In this document: positions 7,991 through 64,000 of the stretch, piece after piece
How the letters are laid out: every line of letters starts with the position of its first letter
How positions within the stretch are numbered: the stretch's first letter is position 1
Assembly: GCA_020891255.1 (NCBI GenBank)
Contig: BQFW01000014.1
Span: 1,364,001-1,428,000 of the forward strand
Source of the DNA: Entomortierella parvispora E1425
Lineage: Eukaryota; Fungi; Mortierellomycota
Direction: 5' to 3'
Length of the DNA: 64,000 nucleotides
Translations under genes and position numbers: made by a program
The notes under the pieces: model-generated
What the model was told of the DNA's origin: nothing
Database searches by the model: none
What the model saw: only the letters and a program-made list of their open reading frames with translations

Positions 7991-8564
7991 CTAGTTTAAG
8001 CAGCCAGCCCGGATCATGTCGTAGGCCATCTTGCCGTTCAAGACCAAGAGACCGAGGTCACCAATGTGTCCAAAAGCACCCAAAGAGCGCTTCTTGGGGT
8101 CACCGCTGGTGTAGCCGTAGCTGTAGGCCACACGACCGAGGCACCAGATGAGACCCAAGGCAGCCGAGGCGGTAGGGTACTGAAGACCGGCGATCAAGAG
8201 GGTGACCATGTAGGAGGTGAAGCCCTCCAAGGTGTTCTGGTGAACACGCTGCTTGCAGTTGAAGATCATCTTCTTCTTGTCCTTGAGGGCCTCAGCCTCA
8301 TCAGCGTACATGATGGGAAGAGGGACATTGGCGACCTTGCGGTAGCCTCCGACACGGGCACCGAGACCGATGACGAGGACGGAAGAGAGGACCGAGACGG
8401 CGAGGGTCTAAAACATGGAATGAGCAGACTGTTAGTACCTGGAGAAGGCCGAGAGAAGGAGGTGGGGGGATGAAGAAGGAGAGGAGGACGACGAGAGAGT
8501 CTGAATGTGAAAGAGTAGTTTCACTTACGTATCCGAATTCGGGAGCGAGGGTGAAGGTGACCAT
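7991..8564 (-). CDS. MAPEG family microsomal glutathione S-transferase (MGST3-like), 2 exons
   Basis: MVTFTLAPEFGY|..GARVGGYRKVANVPLPIMYA..KMIFNCKQRVHQNTLEG..AAALGLIWCLGRVAYSYGYTSGDPKKR. The FNCxQRxHQNxxE and GRxxYxxGY motifs are typical of MAPEG proteins. Confidence 0.9.
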
Positions 8565-9253
8565 TGTAGGAAAGTGAGAGTGGGTGAGAAAAGGGTTTGA
8601 TGATGAGAAAGAAGAGAGAAAAAAAGGAGGAAGGGTGCAGCGTATTTATATAGAAAGGCAACTCGTGAATGAATATCCGGTTTTATTATTTGTTCTTTAG
8701 CCTTCTGGATCAAGGTTCTGGTGAGGTGGGGACACAAAGCGAGGAGGCGATCGCCCTTTTTTTTTTTTTGTCATTTCTTCCACGTCAACGCTTGGCTCTC
8801 TGATCGTGGAGAGTTTTTTTTTCCTTTTTTTTCTTAATTTGTTAGTCTTCCTTCCTCTCCAATAATGGAGGGGTGGGAGAGAGGTGAGGGTCAAGGCCAT
8901 GTGCACAAACGATGACAGGACGACGCCAGTGCATCTCCACCAAAGATCAAAGGGCAAAAACCTTGCGGTGACGAATAATTCGCAAGCAAACGCGCGTCCT
9001 TGATCTGAACCTTGTGGGGCTTTCTCTGGTGTGATCTCACCAATTGCCGGCCCTGCACGACCAGACGCACACGTCGTCTCTGAGCTTTTTTTTTTTTTTT
9101 TTTGACCCCGATCACTTTTTTTTTTTTTCTTCTCCTTGACGATCGTTTGGGCTGGAGACAGCAGTCCATCTTCATGCATTTTTCATCCTCGTGCCTCGTT
9201 CTACTCGATCTCTCCTTTTTTTTTTTTTTTTCTTGCTTTCTTTCTTTATTTTA

Positions 9254-10083
9254 TCATATATCGGAACGCCGGCCCGTGGCGACAAGAACGTCAATCAGAA
9301 AGTAGACGAAACCTCTTCAAGATCGTTTCTAACGTCCTTCAAGATCATGGATATGTCCCACCCAAGCCGACAAAGTAAAATCACTTGTTGTTTATTCAAA
9401 AGTCATATAGTACATGTTCAAGAGAGAAAGAGAGACAGAGAGGAGAGAGAGTGCGTAGTAATGTACATTGCTCATTTCAGGTGGAGCTCACGACTCTCTT
9501 CAATGGTAGGTTCATGACCTTTTGAGGTTTTCCGCAAGTGAAAATAAGAGAAACCGCCAGACTCGTCTTGTTCACCTCCTTCAACAATGCGTGGCGAGCT
9601 CAGAGAGAGGGGCATCACTGGTGTTCGGACAACTCCTCCACCCTGTGCGTTCGTGTGATGAAGAAGGCAAGGGTTCGAGACCGAAGTGCGGCGATGAAGT
9701 GCGGGTGATTGTGGCAAAGTCCGCGACGACGAGTGTACGTCATAGGAGGACGAGGCAGGGGAGGTGGAGACATACAAGTCCTTGCTCTGTCCTTGGTGGG
9801 TTGTTTTGGCAGCAGGCGAACCAATACTGCCACGATCTTGCTTGGACGTAGCTGGATGGTGGCTGTGCTGGTTGTGATTCTGTAAGTAGGTGCTGAGACC
9901 AACGTCGCACTCAAGGCCAGAAGATGCTCGGCGCAAATGTTGGTTGGCTTCACATCCGTAGCCTTGTCCAGCACCCTCGCAAATGTATGGGGATGTTCGG
10001 GGCGAATGCGCTGGAGAGACCTTGGACCCGCCAGTGTTGTCGTTGCCGGATGGGTGTGTGTAAGCTTGTGCGAAAAAGTCCAT
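9254..10083 (-). CDS. Hypothetical Ser/His/Pro-rich low-complexity protein; 3' end uncertain (stop at 9472 unspliced, or 9254 if spliced)
   Basis: ATG at 10083 follows a pyrimidine-rich leader and opens ~200 codons (MDFFAQAYTHPSG...). A possible GTGAGC donor near 9491 joins in frame to ILLCRLGWDISMILKDVRNDLEEV. No recognisable domain. Confidence 0.35.
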
Positions 10084-11787
10084 GGTTTGTTGTTCGTTAT
10101 TGAGGAAGATGAAAGAGTTGTTGTAGGAAAGAGGGGATAGAAGAAAAAATAATGTAGTGTGTGGGAACAGCATAAGATAAGGAAAGGAAAAGGCAGGGTA
10201 AAGGGGGGTCCATGCGCACAAAATGAAAAAAAGTGGTGAAACACAGCACCACCCACAAAAAGATAGAGTGAGAATCAAAGCCTCCCAAATCAGAAAGACC
10301 GAAGGCCCCAACCAGGAGAGACCCCTTCTCTCCCCAGAGACACCCAAAAGAAGCACAAGCGAATCCCCTCAGTCGAGAAACTCATGTCATCACTATGCCA
10401 TGGCCATGTGTACATGGTAACCTGGTAACAAGAGCTTTACGGATTGAGAACCCATATTCATAGACATTGCAGGAGAACGCGAGTCTTGCAGTACAGCTGA
10501 TCCAGACCCTCTCAAGAAGACAATCCAGCAAGGATGTAAAGGGCTGACACATCTACGATCCTGTCTCATTCTCATATCCAGTTCCTGGCGATTGGAAAAG
10601 GTTGAGCAAGTGCAGAGATCTCGATGGAAATGCAAGTGAAAGCCCTGCATTGTCAACCCCACAGATTTTGTAATCTTGCAAGGGGTCATGGTTCTACTGA
10701 GAGCAATGTCCTGTTCAAGCAAATGATCACCAGCGATATTGTTTCTCGCACACCCGTTTCGCTTTCGTTGCCAGCAACCAGCACTCGTTCGAAAACGAAG
10801 GCCTGACTTCAAACATGCCTTTTTTGGTCGCATCATCGAGGAAAAAAATGAAAGTGGAGGAGAAAGCAAGTCCATCACTCTTAGATCAAACACCACCCAC
10901 CACCTATCTCCAGATAACCCAGGGCTCTAAAAGAGACAACAACCCCAACAGTCCTGCAAAGGGCGCGATATATCCATCCGATTGAAAACTAAAAGATGCC
11001 ACACATAGTCTGCTGCTATAAACACTTGTCCCCCAATGAATGAGAAGCAAAGAGTCGTCGCCGCAGAGTGTTTTCGGCAAGGTTGCTAAGTGTCGTCATA
11101 GGCGCTGCAAAACCGATGCAGTTAGGCGACTCCAGAGATGTTTGTCCACAATGTTTGGCTCAAGGTCTACCCAGAAGGACAGAGCAGGGGGAAGCAAGTG
11201 AAGGAGAAAGGACTTTGCCGCCAACCATCCACGCACCTTGTCAGATTTCTGTTCGACTCTCATGGTGTCTATCCAATCTGGTCAACGTACAGACTTGCAC
11301 AAAGACGTAGAAGGAAGGACGCTCGTCATGTGTGTGAGTTTTATCATCAACCAAGGTTTTGAGGCGCGGATGGCGAGCAAAAGTCAAGAGAAAAAAGCGC
11401 CATGAAACGCCATGTAGTCCAGAGGTTTCCGGTAAAAAAAGTCCTTTAGCCTGATATCCTATGTGCACCCAATGAAAAACTGAAGGTGGTATTGTCGTCT
11501 CCTGAAGAAACAGCTCGTTTTATTGAGGTTTGTGCTGGATTGAATGAATGTGAGAAGTAAAGTAGATCCTGGATGCTGATGCTGACATGCATGCAATCAT
11601 CAGTTCCACGTCACGAGCACGCATGACTGCGTTTTTCAACGGGTCAGGCAGGCAGAAAGCGGGCCCTGTGGACAAAAGCAGCCTCCCCTTTCGCGCCGCC
11701 TGTGCTTTGCACCCTTTCTCTGCATTCAGCTGCCCCATTGCACTTTCTCCATTCCCCTTCACTTCACAACCAACAGGAGCTGCAAAC

Positions 11788-52900: not shown

Positions 52901-55159
52901 CGCTTGTCCTCGGTCAACTATAGGAGAGAATGAAGATAACAAGGTCAGGCTCTGTTCTCGTCATCCATCTATGCCATTAATGCGATCAGCTGCACTTTCA
53001 CGAGAACTTACACTGCCTCCTGCACCAAGAGTGGCACTGGTCATAAGAACCTCCTCCAAGAACTCGTTGTCAGAGTTCTTGATCAAGTTCAACAACTCGT
53101 CAGGAAGAGTATCGCGATTCTTCTCCAAGAAACCGTCACAGTCGTAGGTAACATCGTGAGCGTAATGTGAGATGGTGAAGGCCGAGTTGGAGAAACGAGG
53201 CTTGGTGAACCACTTCTTGTGCTTCTCAGTTCCGAGCTGTGAGAACAACTTGTTGCACCAACCCTGGTCCGAACCAGAGGGCATGCGACTCTCCTCGTCC
53301 AAGAGCGAAAGCACTCCGAGCTTTCCTTCAATCATCTCGATACAGGGCTGGTTATCGCTGAACTCGATGAACTTCCAGTCAATCTTCTCGCGGACATACT
53401 CTTCTTGCTCGAGCTTGAAGACATGCTGGTTGAATTCTTGCTGCAGCTTCTCGTTGGCATAGTTAATACAGAACTGTTCGAACGAGTTCTTCTTGAAATG
53501 CTCGAAACCGTAGATATCCAAGACACCGATAAAGGAGTGGATTCTGCTGGCAACAGCCTCGCTCGACAAGCTGGCATTGATGTTGTTCACAAGCCAGTCA
53601 AAGAGCGAAGAGTAGATGTACTTTGCAACAGAGTCACGAACAATCAAACTCTGGTCCGGCTTCAGGCTGGAGACGATCTTTTCCGAGCGAGTGACGATCT
53701 GCTTCTTCACAAGCCATTTCTTGAACTCGGTCAAAGGAATACCAAGGACGCGGGTCGCTGTGATCAAGGAAGGATCATCATCCGAGATCATAGCATCGTT
53801 ACGACCTGTAACCTGGATGTTACCGATGTGAAGAAGGGCAGCAAGGAGCCGGAAAATGTACCATTGGACCTGGACAGAGATACCGATTGTGGAAAGGGCA
53901 CGTTGGGTGATTTCGAATTCAGCAGCGTCGTCAACACCATTGATGACGCTGACTCCGCCCTGTCGCAAGTAGGCAAACTGTTGAATTGACTGCAAGTCGA
54001 GCTCTTTCTTCTCCGATGGAGGTGCACCGGCCACAAGCTGGTAAAAGATATGGTAGTTTCGCTCCAATTCAGGCTGGTAAACGAGACGGGACCGCTCCAA
54101 CAAGTAGGTTCTGATTTTGGCACCGATAATGTTACGCTCCTTGTCGAACTGGATCTCAGTGAATTTACCAAAGCGGGAGGAGTTGTCGTTACGGGTGGTT
54201 TTGGCGTTACCAAAGGCTTCCATGATAGGGTTGGTAGCCAAAATCTGCTCCTCAGTCTCGCTCATTCCGGCCTTGGACGCGTCCTTGCCACGATCACTAT
54301 CGTCGGCGGTGGCAAAATAACGCATGATGAACTTTGCACTGACGGTTTTACCGGCACCACTATGAGAGTGAAGTGTAGAGGAGAAAGTGTGAGTATATGA
54401 GCTTTGCATAAAAGACGCCTTCAGGTATCAAGAAATGGTACCTCTCTCCAGAGACAACAATGGTCTGGTTCTTCTCGTCGCGGATCATGCAGCGATAAGC
54501 ATCTTCGGCAATGGCAAACAAATGGGGCTCCAGTTCACCACGTCTCCTGCCAGAGTAGGCTTGGATGATGTCCTGAGTATAAAGGTTGACGCGAGCGAAA
54601 GGATTTGCGGCAATCAGGACGATTCCAGAGTATGTGTAGATATTGCAGTGTGAGTAACGGGTCTTGATGTTGCTCAACACTAAAGTGCAGGAGGAGAAAA
54701 AAGGGCATCAGGATAAGGTTAGAGTCCCAGTTGCAATCAGACCAGTAGCGTTGCATTGCCGATGCGGGTGCAGGCCTTACCAGCGGGTTCGTTCAGGTAC
54801 GACAGATTCGTCAGATCTTCTGTGCCCTCCAGAAGAGGGGGGTTACGCATGGGGGGCAGGGTTGTATTGTTGGTCTCTTCGATCTTGGCGAGCGTTGAGG
54901 CGAAGGAATGTTCCTATTATTATTTCAAGATTATTTGCCATGTTTGCCATTGTTAGCGTAAAGAAAAGTGATTGGTCGTATGTTCTTGAACCTGTTATGT
55001 AGCAGTTGGTCTGGTTACCTTGCCGTTATCGTCCACAAAGGTCATTGTGACCTTTCCATCGGCAGCGACATCCTTGGTGCTCAAGGTGGCACTGATCCAG
55101 CCCTCCTTGTCGTCCGTGAACCAGCACTTTGTGCCCTTGACGTAGGTATCCAACGACAT
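49921..55159 (-). CDS. MYO2: Class V myosin heavy chain (motor, ~6 IQ motifs, coiled coil, DIL cargo domain)
   Basis: YVKGTKCWFTDDKEGW; IYTYSGIVLIAANPF; SGE|SGAGKT; NPIMEAFGNAKTTRNDNSSRFGK; LDIYGFE; QLRACGVLETIRISCAGYP; IQ repeats; DIL FNDLLMRRNFCTWKRAMQIQYNITRIEEW. Confidence 0.96.
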
Positions 55160-60727: not shown

Positions 60728-61387
60728 TTAGGCCATGGTCATCAAGAGAGCAGCAGCACCAATCAAGACAGAATGGAAGGTAGCCATGCTCTGGAAGACA
60801 CCGACAGCGCTGGAGGGCTTGGAAGAAGTGGATGGGCTAGCAGAACCGCCATGGCCATCAGTCGTGGTGGCGTTGGCGACGGTGATAACAGCAGCGGGGA
60901 AGCCAGCAGTCTTTCCAGAGGCATCAGGGATGTTGGTCCAGTTGTTCCACGCGCCGTTGGTGCAGTGTTGGTAGACAGACCAGTACAAGGGACCCTCCAT
61001 CACGGGCAACTTGAACTGAAGACCGAAATCCTCGTAGTAGCTGTCGAGCAAGTTTCCGCCAGACCAGGTAATGGATCCAACTGTGGTGTTGATGGTACCG
61101 GTAGGGGTGGTGATAGGAGTGTCCAAGGGGACCATATTGATGTTGGTGATCCAGGGAACGGTGGCCTTGGGCTTGACTCCGGAAACACCCTTGGGGATCT
61201 CGACAGTGACGGAGTCAGTGGCATTACCGTCACAGCCGTGAGGGACACGGAAGTTGGACTGGAAGTAGCCACCAGAAACTGCCACGGAAGGGTTAGCAGT
61301 GACATGGGCCTCGACGGAGGAGGAGCCGAGGAGAATGGCAGAGACCAAGGCAGAGGCCAAGACGGTAACGGAGCTAGAGAACTTCAT
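60728..61387 (-). CDS. Secreted, probably GPI-anchored YcnI/DUF1775 copper-binding-domain protein, intronless
   Basis: Signal peptide ending VEA, then mature H28-VTANP; FRVPHGC; T..VTVEIP.GV..VKP; ITWSGG..YEDFGLQFKLP..LYWSVYQHC..WT, which is the YcnI pattern. Ser/Thr linker, then SSA and a hydrophobic tail. TATA (TATAAAG) lies ~100 nt upstream. Confidence 0.85.
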   Translation of the reverse strand: MKFSSSVTVLASALVSAILLGSSSVEAHVTANPSVAVSGGYFQSNFRVPHGCDGNATDSVTVEIPKGVSGVKPKATVPWITNINMVPLDTPITTPTGTINTTVGSITWSGGNLLDSYYEDFGLQFKLPVMEGPLYWSVYQHCTNGAWNNWTNIPDASGKTAGFPAAVITVANATTTDGHGGSASPSTSSKPSSAVGVFQSMATFHSVLIGAAALLMTMA

Positions 61388-61725: not shown

Positions 61726-62864
61726 TTGACTGCCCCGGGTAAGCACAGGGGGGCAAAAGTAAGGTTGACAGCGTGTACCGCACCAGGGGCGGACACCGCT
61801 GTCAATTGTCAAACCTTCTTTTTTGCTCAGCGGTCCATCGATTCGATCCAATCTGTGAGTCCTCGGTAAGTTGTCGAGTTTGTCAAGCCTATGTGTACTT
61901 TTGTTTTCCCTTTTGGTTGAGTGAAAGAAATGAATGTTTAATGTAGCACCACGCAGGCACAACCTGGACAGGATAACCCTCCGAATGCACGCACAGGTGC
62001 GCACCCAATTCATCCAACGGCTATCAGTGAACACGAAAGCTATTTGTCGTCGAATTGCGCTGTAATGTATTGTACGCACAATGCAGTCTGTTTGCCGTCA
62101 GATAGAGGTCGGGGAGACACCTTACTTCTCCTTCTCTTTCTTTTTCTCTACCTCTGTGTCCCGGAGTTCTGAGTCAGCTCTTTGTGATCAGACATCTGCA
62201 TCGCAACCGCCAGGTTCCCGTCCGTGTGTTCGATGGATCCACTGATATGTGCTGTATACATGCATGCAGTACCCGCCGCCCCAAGACCCAACCATCTTTC
62301 TCGATCTTTGTTTTAGCGCCAACCCAGCCGCCCAGTGTCTCTCCAGCCCCTCTGGGTCAATGGAAGGTTCCATGTCTTCTTTCTGACTCGGGAGAGTGTG
62401 TCATTTTAGTTGGGTTCCGTTTTGACGTTCTGGGATTGAAATAATTTTTTTGACATTTTTTTTTTTTTAAAAAAAAAATCACCCTGTCAAAAGAAAAGAA
62501 CACCAAGACCCGGGCTCGGAAAGAACCCTCATGGCATCGAAGCTGGAGATAAGTGAGCAAGAAGCACATCTCCTCCTGCCTAAACGAGGAGATGAAATGG
62601 GGGGAAGAGGTTGGTGCGGTGCTCTAAAGATCAGGCTCACTCTCTTTGTTTGTCGGATAAAGTTTTTTTTTTGACAGGTTGAACCACTTTGACATTCTGC
62701 TATTGACAACGGAGGCGTCGGACCTGTGGCAGGGACCCACGCCTTGCATGAGAAGGGGGGGGGGGGGGTATTCCGCAATGGTGTACCTTCAAGATTTTTC
62801 TCACTGACCTGTCAAAAAAAAAGTTGACTCTGGACCACCACGAGGTTGTCAAAAAAGTTGATTG
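61726..62864. promoter_or_regulatory. Cluster of TTGACA/TGTCAA sites (11 exact, plus TTGACT x2 and TTGACG) and one TTTGCTCA in the YcnI upstream region
   Basis: Exact hexamers start at 61765, 61800, 61807, 61881, 62450, 62485, 62671, 62689, 62703, 62810 and 62847. TTTGCTCA is at 61822. Confidence 0.55.
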
Positions 62865-63154: not shown

Positions 63155-64000
63155 TTATCCGCAACCAGCGCAGCCGCTGGATGAACCATTTGAAGCAGCT
63201 CCATTCTTGGATTGGACCATGACCATGTTCCTCTGTCGCGAGAACACGACCGCGCCCACGCAGAGTCCCAAGATCACGGCAAAGAATAACGCCACGTTAA
63301 AGGTCATGGTAACCAACATAAGCGCGTATCCCAACGTGGTCTCCACAAACATCAACACGGATCGGATCAAGTTCTGGCGCACCTCCCGGGCAGACCAAGG
63401 CTGACGCCACAAGTAGACCCAATTCATCAGGATGGAGCTGGAGCCGGAGGGTCCCACGGTCCTGTTCGAGTTCAACGATACTGAAGTCAAAGGTTCCGAC
63501 GGGCCCGTCTTGGCAGTCTCGGCTTCGGCCTCAATCTCAGCAGCCAATTGCTCGGCCCATTGGATATCCAGGCCGGTACGGTAGGCGGCAATGGTCTGAT
63601 AAAACAGTGTCAAAAAGAAGAGCGCGAACCAAGTGCCAGCGTATTGGCCTGCGGATCGAGGCACCCAAGTCTCAAAGAGGACATAATCCTCAAACCCAGT
63701 GTGGAAATACATCCTCATCTTGGGGGGATTCATGTCTGCACCTCCCACGCCAGCAGCACAGTACTCGGACTGATCAAAGCCCATGCTTGAGGCTGATGGG
63801 GTGCACATAGACTTCCAAGTCGAGCATTGGCTCATCTCTGGCATGGCCTTGCAAAGGATTGCATAGGTACCGAGGGTGTCGCATTCGGCTGCATAGGCGT
63901 TGGGGGCGGGCTTGGGGCAGCGCTCGCATCCAGCCATGTCCATCTCTGTGCAGATACCAATCACAAGAGCGGAGGCACTCTTGGTCGTGGGGAACGACGG
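63155..64000 (-). CDS. Ctr (SLC31) high-affinity copper transporter with a Cys/Met-rich N-terminal ectodomain; 5' end beyond the window
   Basis: MRMYFHTG..VLFETW; TM1 YAGTWFALFFLTLFYQ; TM2 LGYALMLVTMTFN (MxxxM); TM3 FFAVILGLCVG (GxxxG); C-terminal GCAGCG*. Confidence 0.92.
   Translation of the reverse strand, partial: PSFPTTKSASALVIGICTEMDMAGCERCPKPAPNAYAAECDTLGTYAILCKAMPEMSQCSTWKSMCTPSASSMGFDQSEYCAAGVGGADMNPPKMRMYFHTGFEDYVLFETWVPRSAGQYAGTWFALFFLTLFYQTIAAYRTGLDIQWAEQLAAEIEAEAETAKTGPSEPLTSVSLNSNRTVGPSGSSSILMNWVYLWRQPWSAREVRQNLIRSVLMFVETTLGYALMLVTMTFNVALFFAVILGLCVGAVVFSRQRNMVMVQSKNGAASNGSSSGCAGCG

Follow-up and report, generated by a model that had tools for sequence, protein, structure and literature searches.

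The gene and its neighbourhood

The soil fungus Entomortierella belongs to the Mortierellaceae, which are of both biotechnological and soil-ecological interest. The window, i.e., the whole stretch of 64,000 nucleotides that was analysed, contains on the minus strand (60728..61387) a complete single-exon coding sequence for a fungal YcnI/DUF1775 protein, which in the list of open reading frames runs from ATG to stop without interruption and encodes 219 aa plus the stop codon. A search of the 38.9-Mb genome gave a YcnI copy number of one. The sequence-only reading had recognised a DUF1775 domain here, and this was borne out by Pfam: the protein matched PF07987 with an E-value of 1.9e-33 and 116.4 bits (cut-off 25), residues 28-170 (60878..61306, minus strand) covering positions 1-146 of 146, which is the full length of the profile. 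Since profile position 1 is aligned with His28, the domain starts exactly at this residue. The AlphaFold2 model is all-beta with a pLDDT of 96.6, and its best Foldseek matches were 3ESM, 7ME6, 7MEK and 8UM6 (E 1e-9 to 1e-8; target-normalised TM-score 0.80-0.84), a set made up of 3ESM and the apo, Cu-bound and W137F forms of YcnI. The structure prediction that had been proposed thereby recovered the YcnI fold, and the protein is predicted to form a YcnI-type cupredoxin-like/Ig-like beta-sandwich. An NCBIfam search with the protein returned no meaningful match, and an exact-sequence look-up returned no record. The ORF is confirmed as a genuine and intact full-length DUF1775/YcnI domain protein, and its codons (GC3 0.68, 51% C-ending, 4% A-ending) resemble those of the neighbouring genes, in agreement with the host-like, C-ending usage noticed at first sight.

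Immediately upstream, also on the minus strand, lies a gene for a Ctr copper transporter (63155..64000, continuing to 64369 past the end of the window; PF04145, E 2.8e-34). The full Ctr ORF encodes a signal peptide and a Cys-rich ectodomain and is a single uninterrupted frame. Ctr is paired with a gene, here called X, that encodes a paralog of its ectodomain, in effect a free copy of the Cys-rich part, and X likewise reads as one uninterrupted ORF. The other flank of the YcnI gene is occupied by a myosin gene, also eukaryotic. Such surroundings bear on the suspicion of an artefact, according to which the ORF would come from a bacterial contaminant contig or would be a dead relic. A single-exon frame with a bacterial-type domain is what such an artefact could look like; however, the contig that holds the gene is 2.26 Mb long and one of 20 in the assembly, both flanks of the gene are eukaryotic, it combines host codon usage with a eukaryote-type GPI signal, and intact orthologs with 54-77% identity are present across Mortierellaceae genera. 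Bacterial contamination was rejected by the size of the contig and its eukaryotic context, and the probability left to an artefact of either kind is negligible.

The trio formed by Ctr, X and YcnI recurs in Podila, Actinomortierella and Calcarisporiella, so that YcnI is genetically tied to Ctr in at least two deep lineages of Mucoromycota. Linkage to Ctr was not found at the YcnI loci of Conidiobolus, Hyaloraphidium, Umbelopsis, Catenaria and Aphanomyces. The promoter region between Ctr and YcnI (61765..62852, no strand assigned) contains 11 TTGACA/TGTCAA hexamers against 1.85 expected (Poisson P 4e-6), the densest cluster of the window, and the intergenic region between Ctr and X has a second array of eight sites (P 2e-5). 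Both arrays are kept in Podila and Actinomortierella, three Mortierellaceae genomes having been compared in all. The yeast Mac1-type element TTTGCKCR was considered as well and rejected as a shared copper-response element: it is not enriched in the window (16 sites vs 10.8 expected, a count of 16 being reached in 8 of 100 shuffles), and while one site lies upstream of the YcnI gene, the Podila promoter has zero.

Predicted processing and the candidate copper site

The signal peptide and the GPI signal were both judged by rule and by conservation. Residues 1-27 (61307..61387, minus strand) have the features of a signal peptide, with Lys2, a hydrophobic core and a putative cleavage site VEA/HVT that places Val at -3 and Ala at -1, directly before the residue at which the PF07987 profile starts. 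The cleavage after Ala27 claimed from the letters thus fits both the -3/-1 rule and the profile, and the protein would be cleaved to a mature form with His28 at its N-terminus. A small residue directly precedes the His in the 25 named eukaryotic homologs, with the exceptions of an Arg in the three-domain protein of Hyaloraphidium and of one homolog in which the pattern matched the wrong His.

After the domain comes a Ser/Thr/Gly-rich linker (residues 171-191; 60815..60877, minus strand), delimited from the translation and a sequon scan, with an N-glycosylation sequon at Asn172; in the orthologs this region is of low complexity and of varying length. Residues 192-219 (60731..60814, minus strand) read as a GPI-attachment-type signal, in which K-P-S192-S-A is followed by a spacer of nine residues and then by a hydrophobic end, 16 residues long and without any basic one, S192-S-A being the candidate omega site. 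Orthologs keep an [S/N/D]-[A/S/G]-[A/G] triplet and an uncharged hydrophobic C-terminus, and the layout of signal peptide, His1 and uncharged hydrophobic C-terminus is common to the 25 named eukaryotic homologs. By these rules and their conservation, the protein is probably GPI-anchored at the cell surface. Bacterial relatives end instead in a TM helix followed by Arg/Lys, or in His-rich tails, and the suggestion that the bacterial TM anchor had been exchanged for a Ser/Thr linker plus a GPI-type signal agrees with both lines of evidence.

The candidate copper-site residues were counted over the 149 nearest representatives, which are mostly bacterial-type. His28 (codon 61304..61306, minus strand), the predicted mature N-terminal residue, is His in 139/139 and is the counterpart of B. 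subtilis YcnI His27, the N-terminal His with a Cu ligand role (PMC8424229). Trp150, within NNWT (codon 60938..60940, minus strand), is Trp in 143/143 and is aligned exactly with residue 111 of the 7ME6 chain, which is Trp137 of B. subtilis YcnI, so the proposed match to the YcnI Trp ligand region was sustained. The second His, His50 of the motif RVPHGC (codon 61238..61240, minus strand), is present and is a candidate second Cu ligand. The HMMER alignment to 3ESM (PTESE vs PHGCD) sets it one residue before the Glu, not in its place, and the column of Glu50 of B. subtilis YcnI holds Gly51 in the window protein, which thus lacks the Glu ligand. This absence does not exclude membership in DUF1775, because a class of "His+Trp but no Glu" proteins, mainly proteobacterial and amounting to about 40% of the family, has already been described (Damle et al. 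2021, PMC8424229). Moreover, His50 is His in 144/145 of the mostly bacterial-type representatives and, being near-invariant there, is not a fungal novelty, contrary to what an adaptation of the fungal protein would imply.

The Cys residues provide a further element of the putative site. Cys52 (codon 61232..61234, minus strand) and Cys142, the last residue of Gln140-His141-Cys142 (codons 60962..60970, minus strand), occur as a pair in 137 representatives and are both missing in 5, with a single Cys in none; such perfect co-variation points to a disulfide between them, and a Cys52-Cys142 bond is probably formed. In the same triplet Gln is conserved in 145/146 and Cys in 139/145, and His141 was rejected as a ligand for its lack of conservation (H, R, T or K at this position). 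From these residues, binding of Cu(II) by the protein and a ligand role of His50 may be proposed. Removal of the signal peptide would expose His28 and make its amino group and imidazole available to Cu(II), the site would consist of the His28 amine and imidazole together with His50, Trp150 would be packed over the metal, and the Cys52-Cys142 disulfide would hold His50 in place.

Phyletic spread and origin

Homologs of the window protein were found in Chytridiomycota, Blastocladiomycota, Zoopagomycota, other Mucoromycota and one oomycete, and the orthologs across these phyla have the same design of signal peptide, His1 and GPI-like end. At E<=0.001 there were 1292 DUF1775 matches, of which 150 were listed; among the matches examined the eukaryotes consisted of early-diverging fungi and the oomycete only, with Dikarya absent, and the oomycete copy would appear to have come from a fungus. 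In the tree, the nearest rows to the window protein are fungal, the eukaryotes are grouped in one half, inside the subfamily with the PHGC motif, and the Mortierellaceae are placed within this eukaryote-dominated half. Monophyly, i.e., a single eukaryotic origin, was not rejected (AU p = 0.27), on a backbone that is weak and in which the eukaryotes are interspersed with a small number of bacterial sequences, as exemplified by one that groups with Basidiobolus and Synchytrium with support of 95/87. The highest bacterial identity to the window protein was 41-42%, as given by a genome-collection scan with an 11-sequence alignment, the scan pattern (RVPHGC...) biasing its matches towards the PHGC class.

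These data speak to the idea, put forward by the sequence-only reading, that a bacterial gene was transferred to the fungus and was adapted in Entomortierella by gaining a second His, and with it a bis-His brace, along with a GPI tail, the missing introns being a trace of the event. The great majority of DUF1775 domains are bacterial (PMC8424229), those of eukaryotes fall inside a bacterial PHGC subfamily and the window gene is intronless, all of which would suit such a transfer. Yet His50 is a bacterial inheritance, the signal/GPI-like design is the same across four phyla of fungi and in an oomycete, and the linkage of Ctr, X and YcnI is common to Calcarisporiella. The absence of introns is no better as a trace: the gene is indeed single-exon, as had been stressed against an intron-rich neighbourhood, but Ctr next to it and the Ctr paralog read as uninterrupted frames as well, and YcnI orthologs of several other lineages have introns, those of four lineages extending over a longer stretch of DNA than the coding sequence itself and one showing a canonical GTAAGT donor. 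Nor did the genome-collection scan reveal any close bacterial relative that could act as an endosymbiont-like donor, by which a recent transfer from Mortierella endobacteria was rejected; for the Mortierellaceae, neither nesting in a bacterial group nor a close bacterial relative was found. Adaptation of a transferred gene within Entomortierella is thus very improbable.

What stands of the claim is its older and more general part. As the phylogeny largely gives the broad eukaryotic clade that had been named as contrary evidence, recent or lineage-specific transfer is largely refuted, while it is likely that an early ancestor of the fungi received the gene by an ancient transfer. Since the design is common to several phyla, any transfer from bacteria must predate their split, and an identity of only 41-42% to the best bacterial match means that it would be very old and not specific to Entomortierella. 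Judged by these comparisons, the YcnI gene is ancient in early-diverging fungi, neither peculiar to Mortierella nor a recent bacterial import. That the eukaryotic clade came from bacteria is plausible, because in bacteria DUF1775 is a very large and varied family (PMC8424229) and eukaryotes form one cluster within the PHGC subfamily; the probable source would be a single ancient bacterial donor of this subfamily rather than any recent transfer. The domain has a long eukaryotic history, with an anchoring solution specific to eukaryotes.

Proposed role and comparison with known copper systems

The position of the YcnI gene beside a Ctr copper importer makes a cell-surface copper catcher its most likely product. 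We consider it probable, with fair rather than full confidence, that the product of the gene is a surface Cu protein, secreted and probably GPI-anchored, that feeds Ctr and that descends from an old clade of early-diverging fungi. The protein would capture extracellular Cu(II), which after reduction would pass to the importer encoded next door, and the third member of the co-regulated locus would supply the ectodomain of Ctr once more, as a free but tethered protein. By analogy with YcnI-YcnJ of B. subtilis and Bim1/Cbi1-Ctr1 of Cryptococcus, capture of Cu(II) at the surface in support of Ctr is the most likely function, and a hand-off of copper from YcnI to Ctr may be part of it; a complex prediction with the YcnI domain and the Ctr ectodomain returned a score of 0.00 without a verdict and is neutral as evidence.

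A role in buffering or detoxification, by which excess Cu(II) would be sequestered in the cell wall instead of being supplied to Ctr, would call for the same Cu-binding domain at the same surface location. Early discussion of YcnI considered that it might limit copper, the roles of bacterial DUF1775 proteins are unsettled (PMC8424229), and most of the fungal lineages examined show no linkage to Ctr. Nonetheless, the genes to which it is linked and with which it has the promoter hexamer in common are those of a high-affinity importer and an ectodomain paralog rather than of efflux or metallothionein proteins, and B. subtilis genetics favour a role under copper limitation (PMC12362106), which leaves buffering an unlikely function, albeit one of some weight.

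Less probable still is a redox or enzymatic role, either as an LPMO-like oxidase of cell-wall polysaccharide or in cupredoxin-like electron transfer, through a His-brace copper. The N-terminal His, the second invariant His and the invariant Gln recall LPMO second-sphere residues, electron transfer has been raised for YcnI/X325 in a review (PMC10952591), and in Calcarisporiella a DOMON-cytochrome b561 gene follows the ortholog. On the other side, there is no relation to LPMO in fold or sequence, the sole LPMO match being at chance level (E 0.79) and the Foldseek matches listed containing only YcnI-type structures, with neither LPMO/X325 nor CopC homology among them; the window protein has no substrate-binding surface or CBM, and no convincing demonstration of redox activity exists for this group of proteins (PMC10952591).

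Returning to copper capture for Ctr, a broader version may be put forward tentatively, being possible but on balance doubtful as a whole: in early-diverging fungi, a YcnI protein derived from bacteria would scavenge extracellular Cu(II) for Ctr and be the counterpart of the unrelated Bim1/X325 of Dikarya, encoded in Mucoromycota by an ancient Ctr/ectodomain/YcnI locus co-regulated by a TTGACA-binding factor and equipped with a disulfide-locked PHGC brace of two His residues (His1 + His50). If true, this brace would be a mode of coordination that no DUF1775 structure has shown so far. The literature searched treats YcnI/DUF1775 as a copper protein of bacteria alone (PMC8424229, PMC12362106, PMC10952591), and the fungal copies have automatic database labels with no paper devoted to them. 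The fungal protein offers a tractable eukaryotic model for the "no-Glu" PHGC class, and the repeated TTGACA sites make the locus a test bed for copper regulation in Mortierellaceae.

Among known systems, CopC and PCuAC are also small beta-sandwich extracytoplasmic Cu(II) binders with an N-terminal His and located near copper importers (PMC12362106), but they belong to different Pfam families and gave no sequence or Foldseek match to the window protein among the matches listed. A parallel in genetic setting is B. subtilis YcnI, which binds Cu(II) through its N-terminal His, Glu50 and Trp137 (PMC8424229) and exchanges it with the importer YcnJ (PMC12362106). Both proteins share Pfam family and fold and the equivalent Trp, and both are encoded beside a copper importer; the mature N-terminal His and an extracytoplasmic, membrane-tethered position are also common to them, as predicted for the fungal protein. 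At only about 20% sequence identity, the fungal protein differs by having Gly51 in place of the Glu50 ligand with His50 adjacent, by the predicted Cys52-Cys142 disulfide and by a GPI-type signal where YcnI has a C-terminal TM helix; its partner is a eukaryotic Ctr channel, whereas YcnJ joins CopC, CopD and YtkA in one fused protein.

In sequence, a near counterpart is the bacterial "no Glu" class, with 33-42% identity, the identical signature His1 ... P-H-G-C ... Q-x-C ... W and copper-related neighbours, as in a DUF2946-DUF1775-TonB-receptor operon and in DUF1775-PCuAC fusions. Its members are either soluble proteins of the periplasm, many of which carry His-rich tails or a fused PCuAC, or TM-anchored, and differ by the lack of the Ser/Thr linker and GPI signal. 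No structure of this class has been solved, 3ESM and B. subtilis YcnI being the only ones among the structures searched.

In design, finally, the protein resembles Bim1/Cbi1 of Cryptococcus and X325 of Dikarya, GPI-anchored secreted Cu proteins with an N-terminal His that work together with Ctr when copper is limiting (PMC9258870, PMC12113139, PMC10952591), Bim1/Cbi1 taking part in Ctr1-dependent uptake (PMC9258870, PMC12113139). These have an LPMO-like fold and belong to a family unrelated to the YcnI-like protein of the window. Hence, the tie between YcnI and Ctr in deep Mucoromycota suggests two separate origins in fungi for the capture of extracellular Cu(II) before it reaches Ctr, by folds that are unrelated to each other, one YcnI-like and the other the LPMO-like Bim1 of Dikarya.

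The YcnI gene and its predicted surface design

An uninterrupted open reading frame of 219 codons at 60728-61387 (minus strand) encodes a protein, here YcnI, whose residues 28-170 cover the Pfam DUF1775 profile fully (positions 1-146 of 146; E 1.9e-33; 116 bits, where the cut-off is 25). Since residue 28 falls on profile position 1, the domain starts exactly at His28. Modelled with AlphaFold2 on an alignment of 64 sequences, residues 28-175 form an all-beta domain with a mean pLDDT of 96.6. In Foldseek its top matches were the two DUF1775 proteins of known structure, 3ESM from Nocardia and YcnI from B. subtilis (apo, Cu-bound and W137F), with E values of 1e-9 to 1e-8 and target-normalised TM-scores of 0.80-0.84, and generic Ig-like domains ranked next. 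The domain and fold proposed in the sequence-only reading are thus confirmed. YcnI belongs to a known family, and in UniRef the fungal copies carry the label "YncI copper-binding domain-containing protein"; no treatment of eukaryotic members was found in the searched literature that mentions YcnI or DUF1775, and what is new is their eukaryotic, GPI-type, Ctr-linked form.

Contamination was excluded: the gene is single-copy in the 38.9-Mb assembly of 20 contigs, lies on a 2.26-Mb contig and has the codon usage of its neighbours (GC3 0.68; 51% C-ending, 4% A-ending). A myosin motor-domain frame at 52961-54409 (minus strand; PF00063, E 7e-176), which is probably a single exon of a larger gene, confirms the eukaryotic context of the locus.

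The signal peptide ends in V-E-A and His28 is the next residue, so that His is the predicted first residue of the mature protein, as had been suggested. This design is common to the 25 named eukaryotic homologs, which have a short signal peptide with a small residue immediately before His, except for two entries: the three-domain protein of Hyaloraphidium, with Arg at that place, and one pattern match at the wrong His. At the other end, a Ser/Thr/Gly linker leads into K-P-S192-S-A, a spacer of nine residues and a hydrophobic end of 16 residues, after which there is no charge. Orthologs retain the small triplet ([S/N/D]-[A/S/G]-[A/G]), the spacer and the hydrophobic uncharged end. By rules and by this conservation, the C-terminus fits a GPI-attachment-type signal. 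Bacterial DUF1775 relatives, in contrast, are soluble with His-rich tails or end in a transmembrane helix followed by Arg/Lys, which is in line with the proposed replacement of the bacterial anchor.

The predicted metal site

The sequence-only reading had placed a second His at about the position of the YcnI Glu ligand and had proposed a His-brace-like site in a protein adapted to the fungal surface. The second His is present, but His50 lies one residue ahead of the Glu of 3ESM (P-H-G-C-D versus P-T-E-S-E), and the Glu column holds Gly51; the B. subtilis loop is presumably one residue shorter here, which leaves exact residue equivalence uncertain. Conservation was assessed in 149 best representatives from an exhaustive HMMER search, aligned to the family profile and mostly bacterial-type by their C-termini. 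His28 (139/139) and Trp150 (143/143) are invariant, His50 is found in 144 of 145 and Gln140 in 145 of 146, Gly51 occurs in 135, and His141 is not conserved. The presence of His50 in these mostly bacterial-type proteins contradicts a fungal adaptation.

The late Trp was matched correctly: Trp150 aligns in HMMER with residue 111 of the 7ME6 chain, i.e., Trp137 of B. subtilis YcnI, which caps the copper (PMC8424229). Damle and others described a DUF1775 class that keeps His and Trp without Glu, "predominantly proteobacterial" and perhaps with "a different ligand set" (PMC8424229). By sequence, YcnI and these representatives are this class, and no structure of it was found among the solved structures searched with Foldseek. 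Cys52 and Cys142 co-vary perfectly in the representatives (both in 137, neither in 5, a single Cys in none), a new observation of this analysis; because the two are present or absent together without exception, it argues for a disulfide that would tie the His50 loop to the Gln140 strand. Near-invariant and putatively braced in this way, His50 would be the natural candidate ligand in place of Glu, and might complete a true histidine brace with His28.

Trp150 also lies at the centre of an N-glycosylation sequon, N-W-T (residues 149-151; 60935-60943, minus strand), retained in Mortierellaceae and not in every fungal homolog. Another sequon, Asn55-Ala-Thr, comes after the PHGC loop. Glycans might stand next to the metal site.

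Distribution and origin

Homologs were found, by word-based and exhaustive searches and by cluster look-ups, in all genera of Mortierellaceae sampled (full-length orthologs, 54-77% identity). Holders also include other Mucoromycota (Calcarisporiella, Umbelopsis), Zoopagomycota in the broad sense (Basidiobolus, Conidiobolus), Chytridiomycota (Hyaloraphidium, Quaeritorhiza, Phlyctochytrium, Boothiomyces, Cladochytrium, Synchytrium, Rhizophlyctis, Polychytrium, Borealophlyctis), Blastocladiomycota (Blastocladiella, Catenaria, Allomyces) and the oomycete Aphanomyces; Dikarya were absent among the matches listed. In Calcarisporiella, Umbelopsis, Catenaria and Hyaloraphidium the gene is longer in DNA than its own coding sequence, and the Calcarisporiella gene shows a canonical GTAAGT donor; these genes have therefore long resided in eukaryotes.

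In maximum-likelihood trees of 145-147 columns, whose backbone is weak, all eukaryotic sequences fall in one part along with a handful of bacterial ones, Mortierellaceae forming a starred clade inside it, and a single eukaryotic clade was not rejected (AU test, p 0.27). Other fungal phyla share 44-50% identity with YcnI over matched stretches and bacteria are no closer, at most 41-42% in a scan of one genome per species, where most relatives came from Alphaproteobacteria and the rest from Betaproteobacteria, Bdellovibrio, Cyanobacteria, Chloroflexia and further groups. This broad eukaryotic clade tells largely against the bacteria-to-fungus transfer first proposed. Yet one ancient bacterial origin of the eukaryotic cluster would be most economical, since bacteria hold a very large part of the family and the eukaryotic sequences group together within a single bacterial subfamily; any such origin has to be older than the split between these fungal phyla. 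One relative near the fungal cluster, on a bacterial metagenome contig (L092:1589-4870, plus strand), is clearly bacterial and lies in a DUF2946 - DUF1775 - TonB-dependent receptor operon, in a context like Gram-negative outer-membrane copper uptake.

The Aphanomyces euteiches pair (L010:5748-6245, minus; 8001-8624, plus) nests with the chytrid Polychytrium (support 100/98), and both cysteines are lost in all three proteins (P-H-S-Y-P), which suggests a secondary fungus-to-oomycete transfer. Hyaloraphidium curvatum has two head-to-head genes (L007:5467-6290, minus; 8001-10211, plus), for a single-domain paralog and a 529-residue protein of three tandem DUF1775 domains with a GPI-like tail; each of the three domains is most closely related to the other two, which indicates an internal duplication.

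Linkage to Ctr and a proposed role in copper capture

The upstream neighbour, which lies on the same strand from 63155 past the window end (ATG 64369, minus), encodes a Ctr copper transporter (PF04145, E 2.8e-34) that has a signal peptide and whose long ectodomain is rich in Cys. Head-to-head with it lies gene X (263 aa; L011:2389-3180, plus, in DNA running past the window end, equivalent to 65389-66180), a secreted Cys-rich free copy of that ectodomain (35% identity, tblastn). It has a signal peptide of its own and a GPI-like tail, its mature form is predicted to start with His (VSA before HPGHD), and it holds a GDHSGHGSG stretch. X is conserved, and the trio of X, Ctr and YcnI recurs, in Podila, where the order is X(-), Ctr(+), YcnI(+), in Actinomortierella, with Ctr(-), X(+), YcnI(+), and in Calcarisporiella, with Ctr(-), X homolog(+), two small genes and YcnI(+). 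Directly downstream of YcnI in Calcarisporiella thermophila, a DOMON/CDH-cytochrome/cytochrome b561 gene (L005:9461-10770, plus) encodes a candidate cupric reductase of the pathway. The trio is absent at the Conidiobolus, Hyaloraphidium, Umbelopsis, Catenaria and Aphanomyces loci.

Upstream of YcnI, 1.1 kb (61765-62852) holds 11 TTGACA/TGTCAA hexamers where 1.85 would be expected (P 4e-6) and is their densest cluster within the window; the Ctr-X intergenic region (L011:1478-2244) holds eight (P 2e-5). The two regions are enriched in Podila (10 and 10) and in Actinomortierella (7 and 7) as well, but not in Calcarisporiella, which supports a putative co-regulation of the three genes in Mortierellaceae. 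TGACA is a TALE-homeodomain core, which serves as a lead only, and a yeast Mac1-type element showed no enrichment.

By homology, mature YcnI would bind Cu(II) through the amine and imidazole of His28, under Trp150, and at the surface would capture copper for uptake by Ctr. Its surface design, the linkage to Ctr and the promoter element that the genes share make capture for Ctr the best-supported reading, and we regard it as reasonably probable; copper buffering by YcnI seems unlikely, and a redox role quite improbable. Capture for Ctr has parallels in known systems. In B. subtilis, Cu(II) is exchanged between YcnI and the CopC domain that lies on the extracellular side of the importer YcnJ, and YcnI is of importance when copper is limiting (PMC12362106). 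In Cryptococcus the GPI-anchored Bim1/Cbi1, which is unrelated to YcnI, acts with Ctr1, and in Pseudogymnoascus copper withholding co-induces Ctr genes, Bim1-like genes and a reductase (PMC9258870, PMC12113139).
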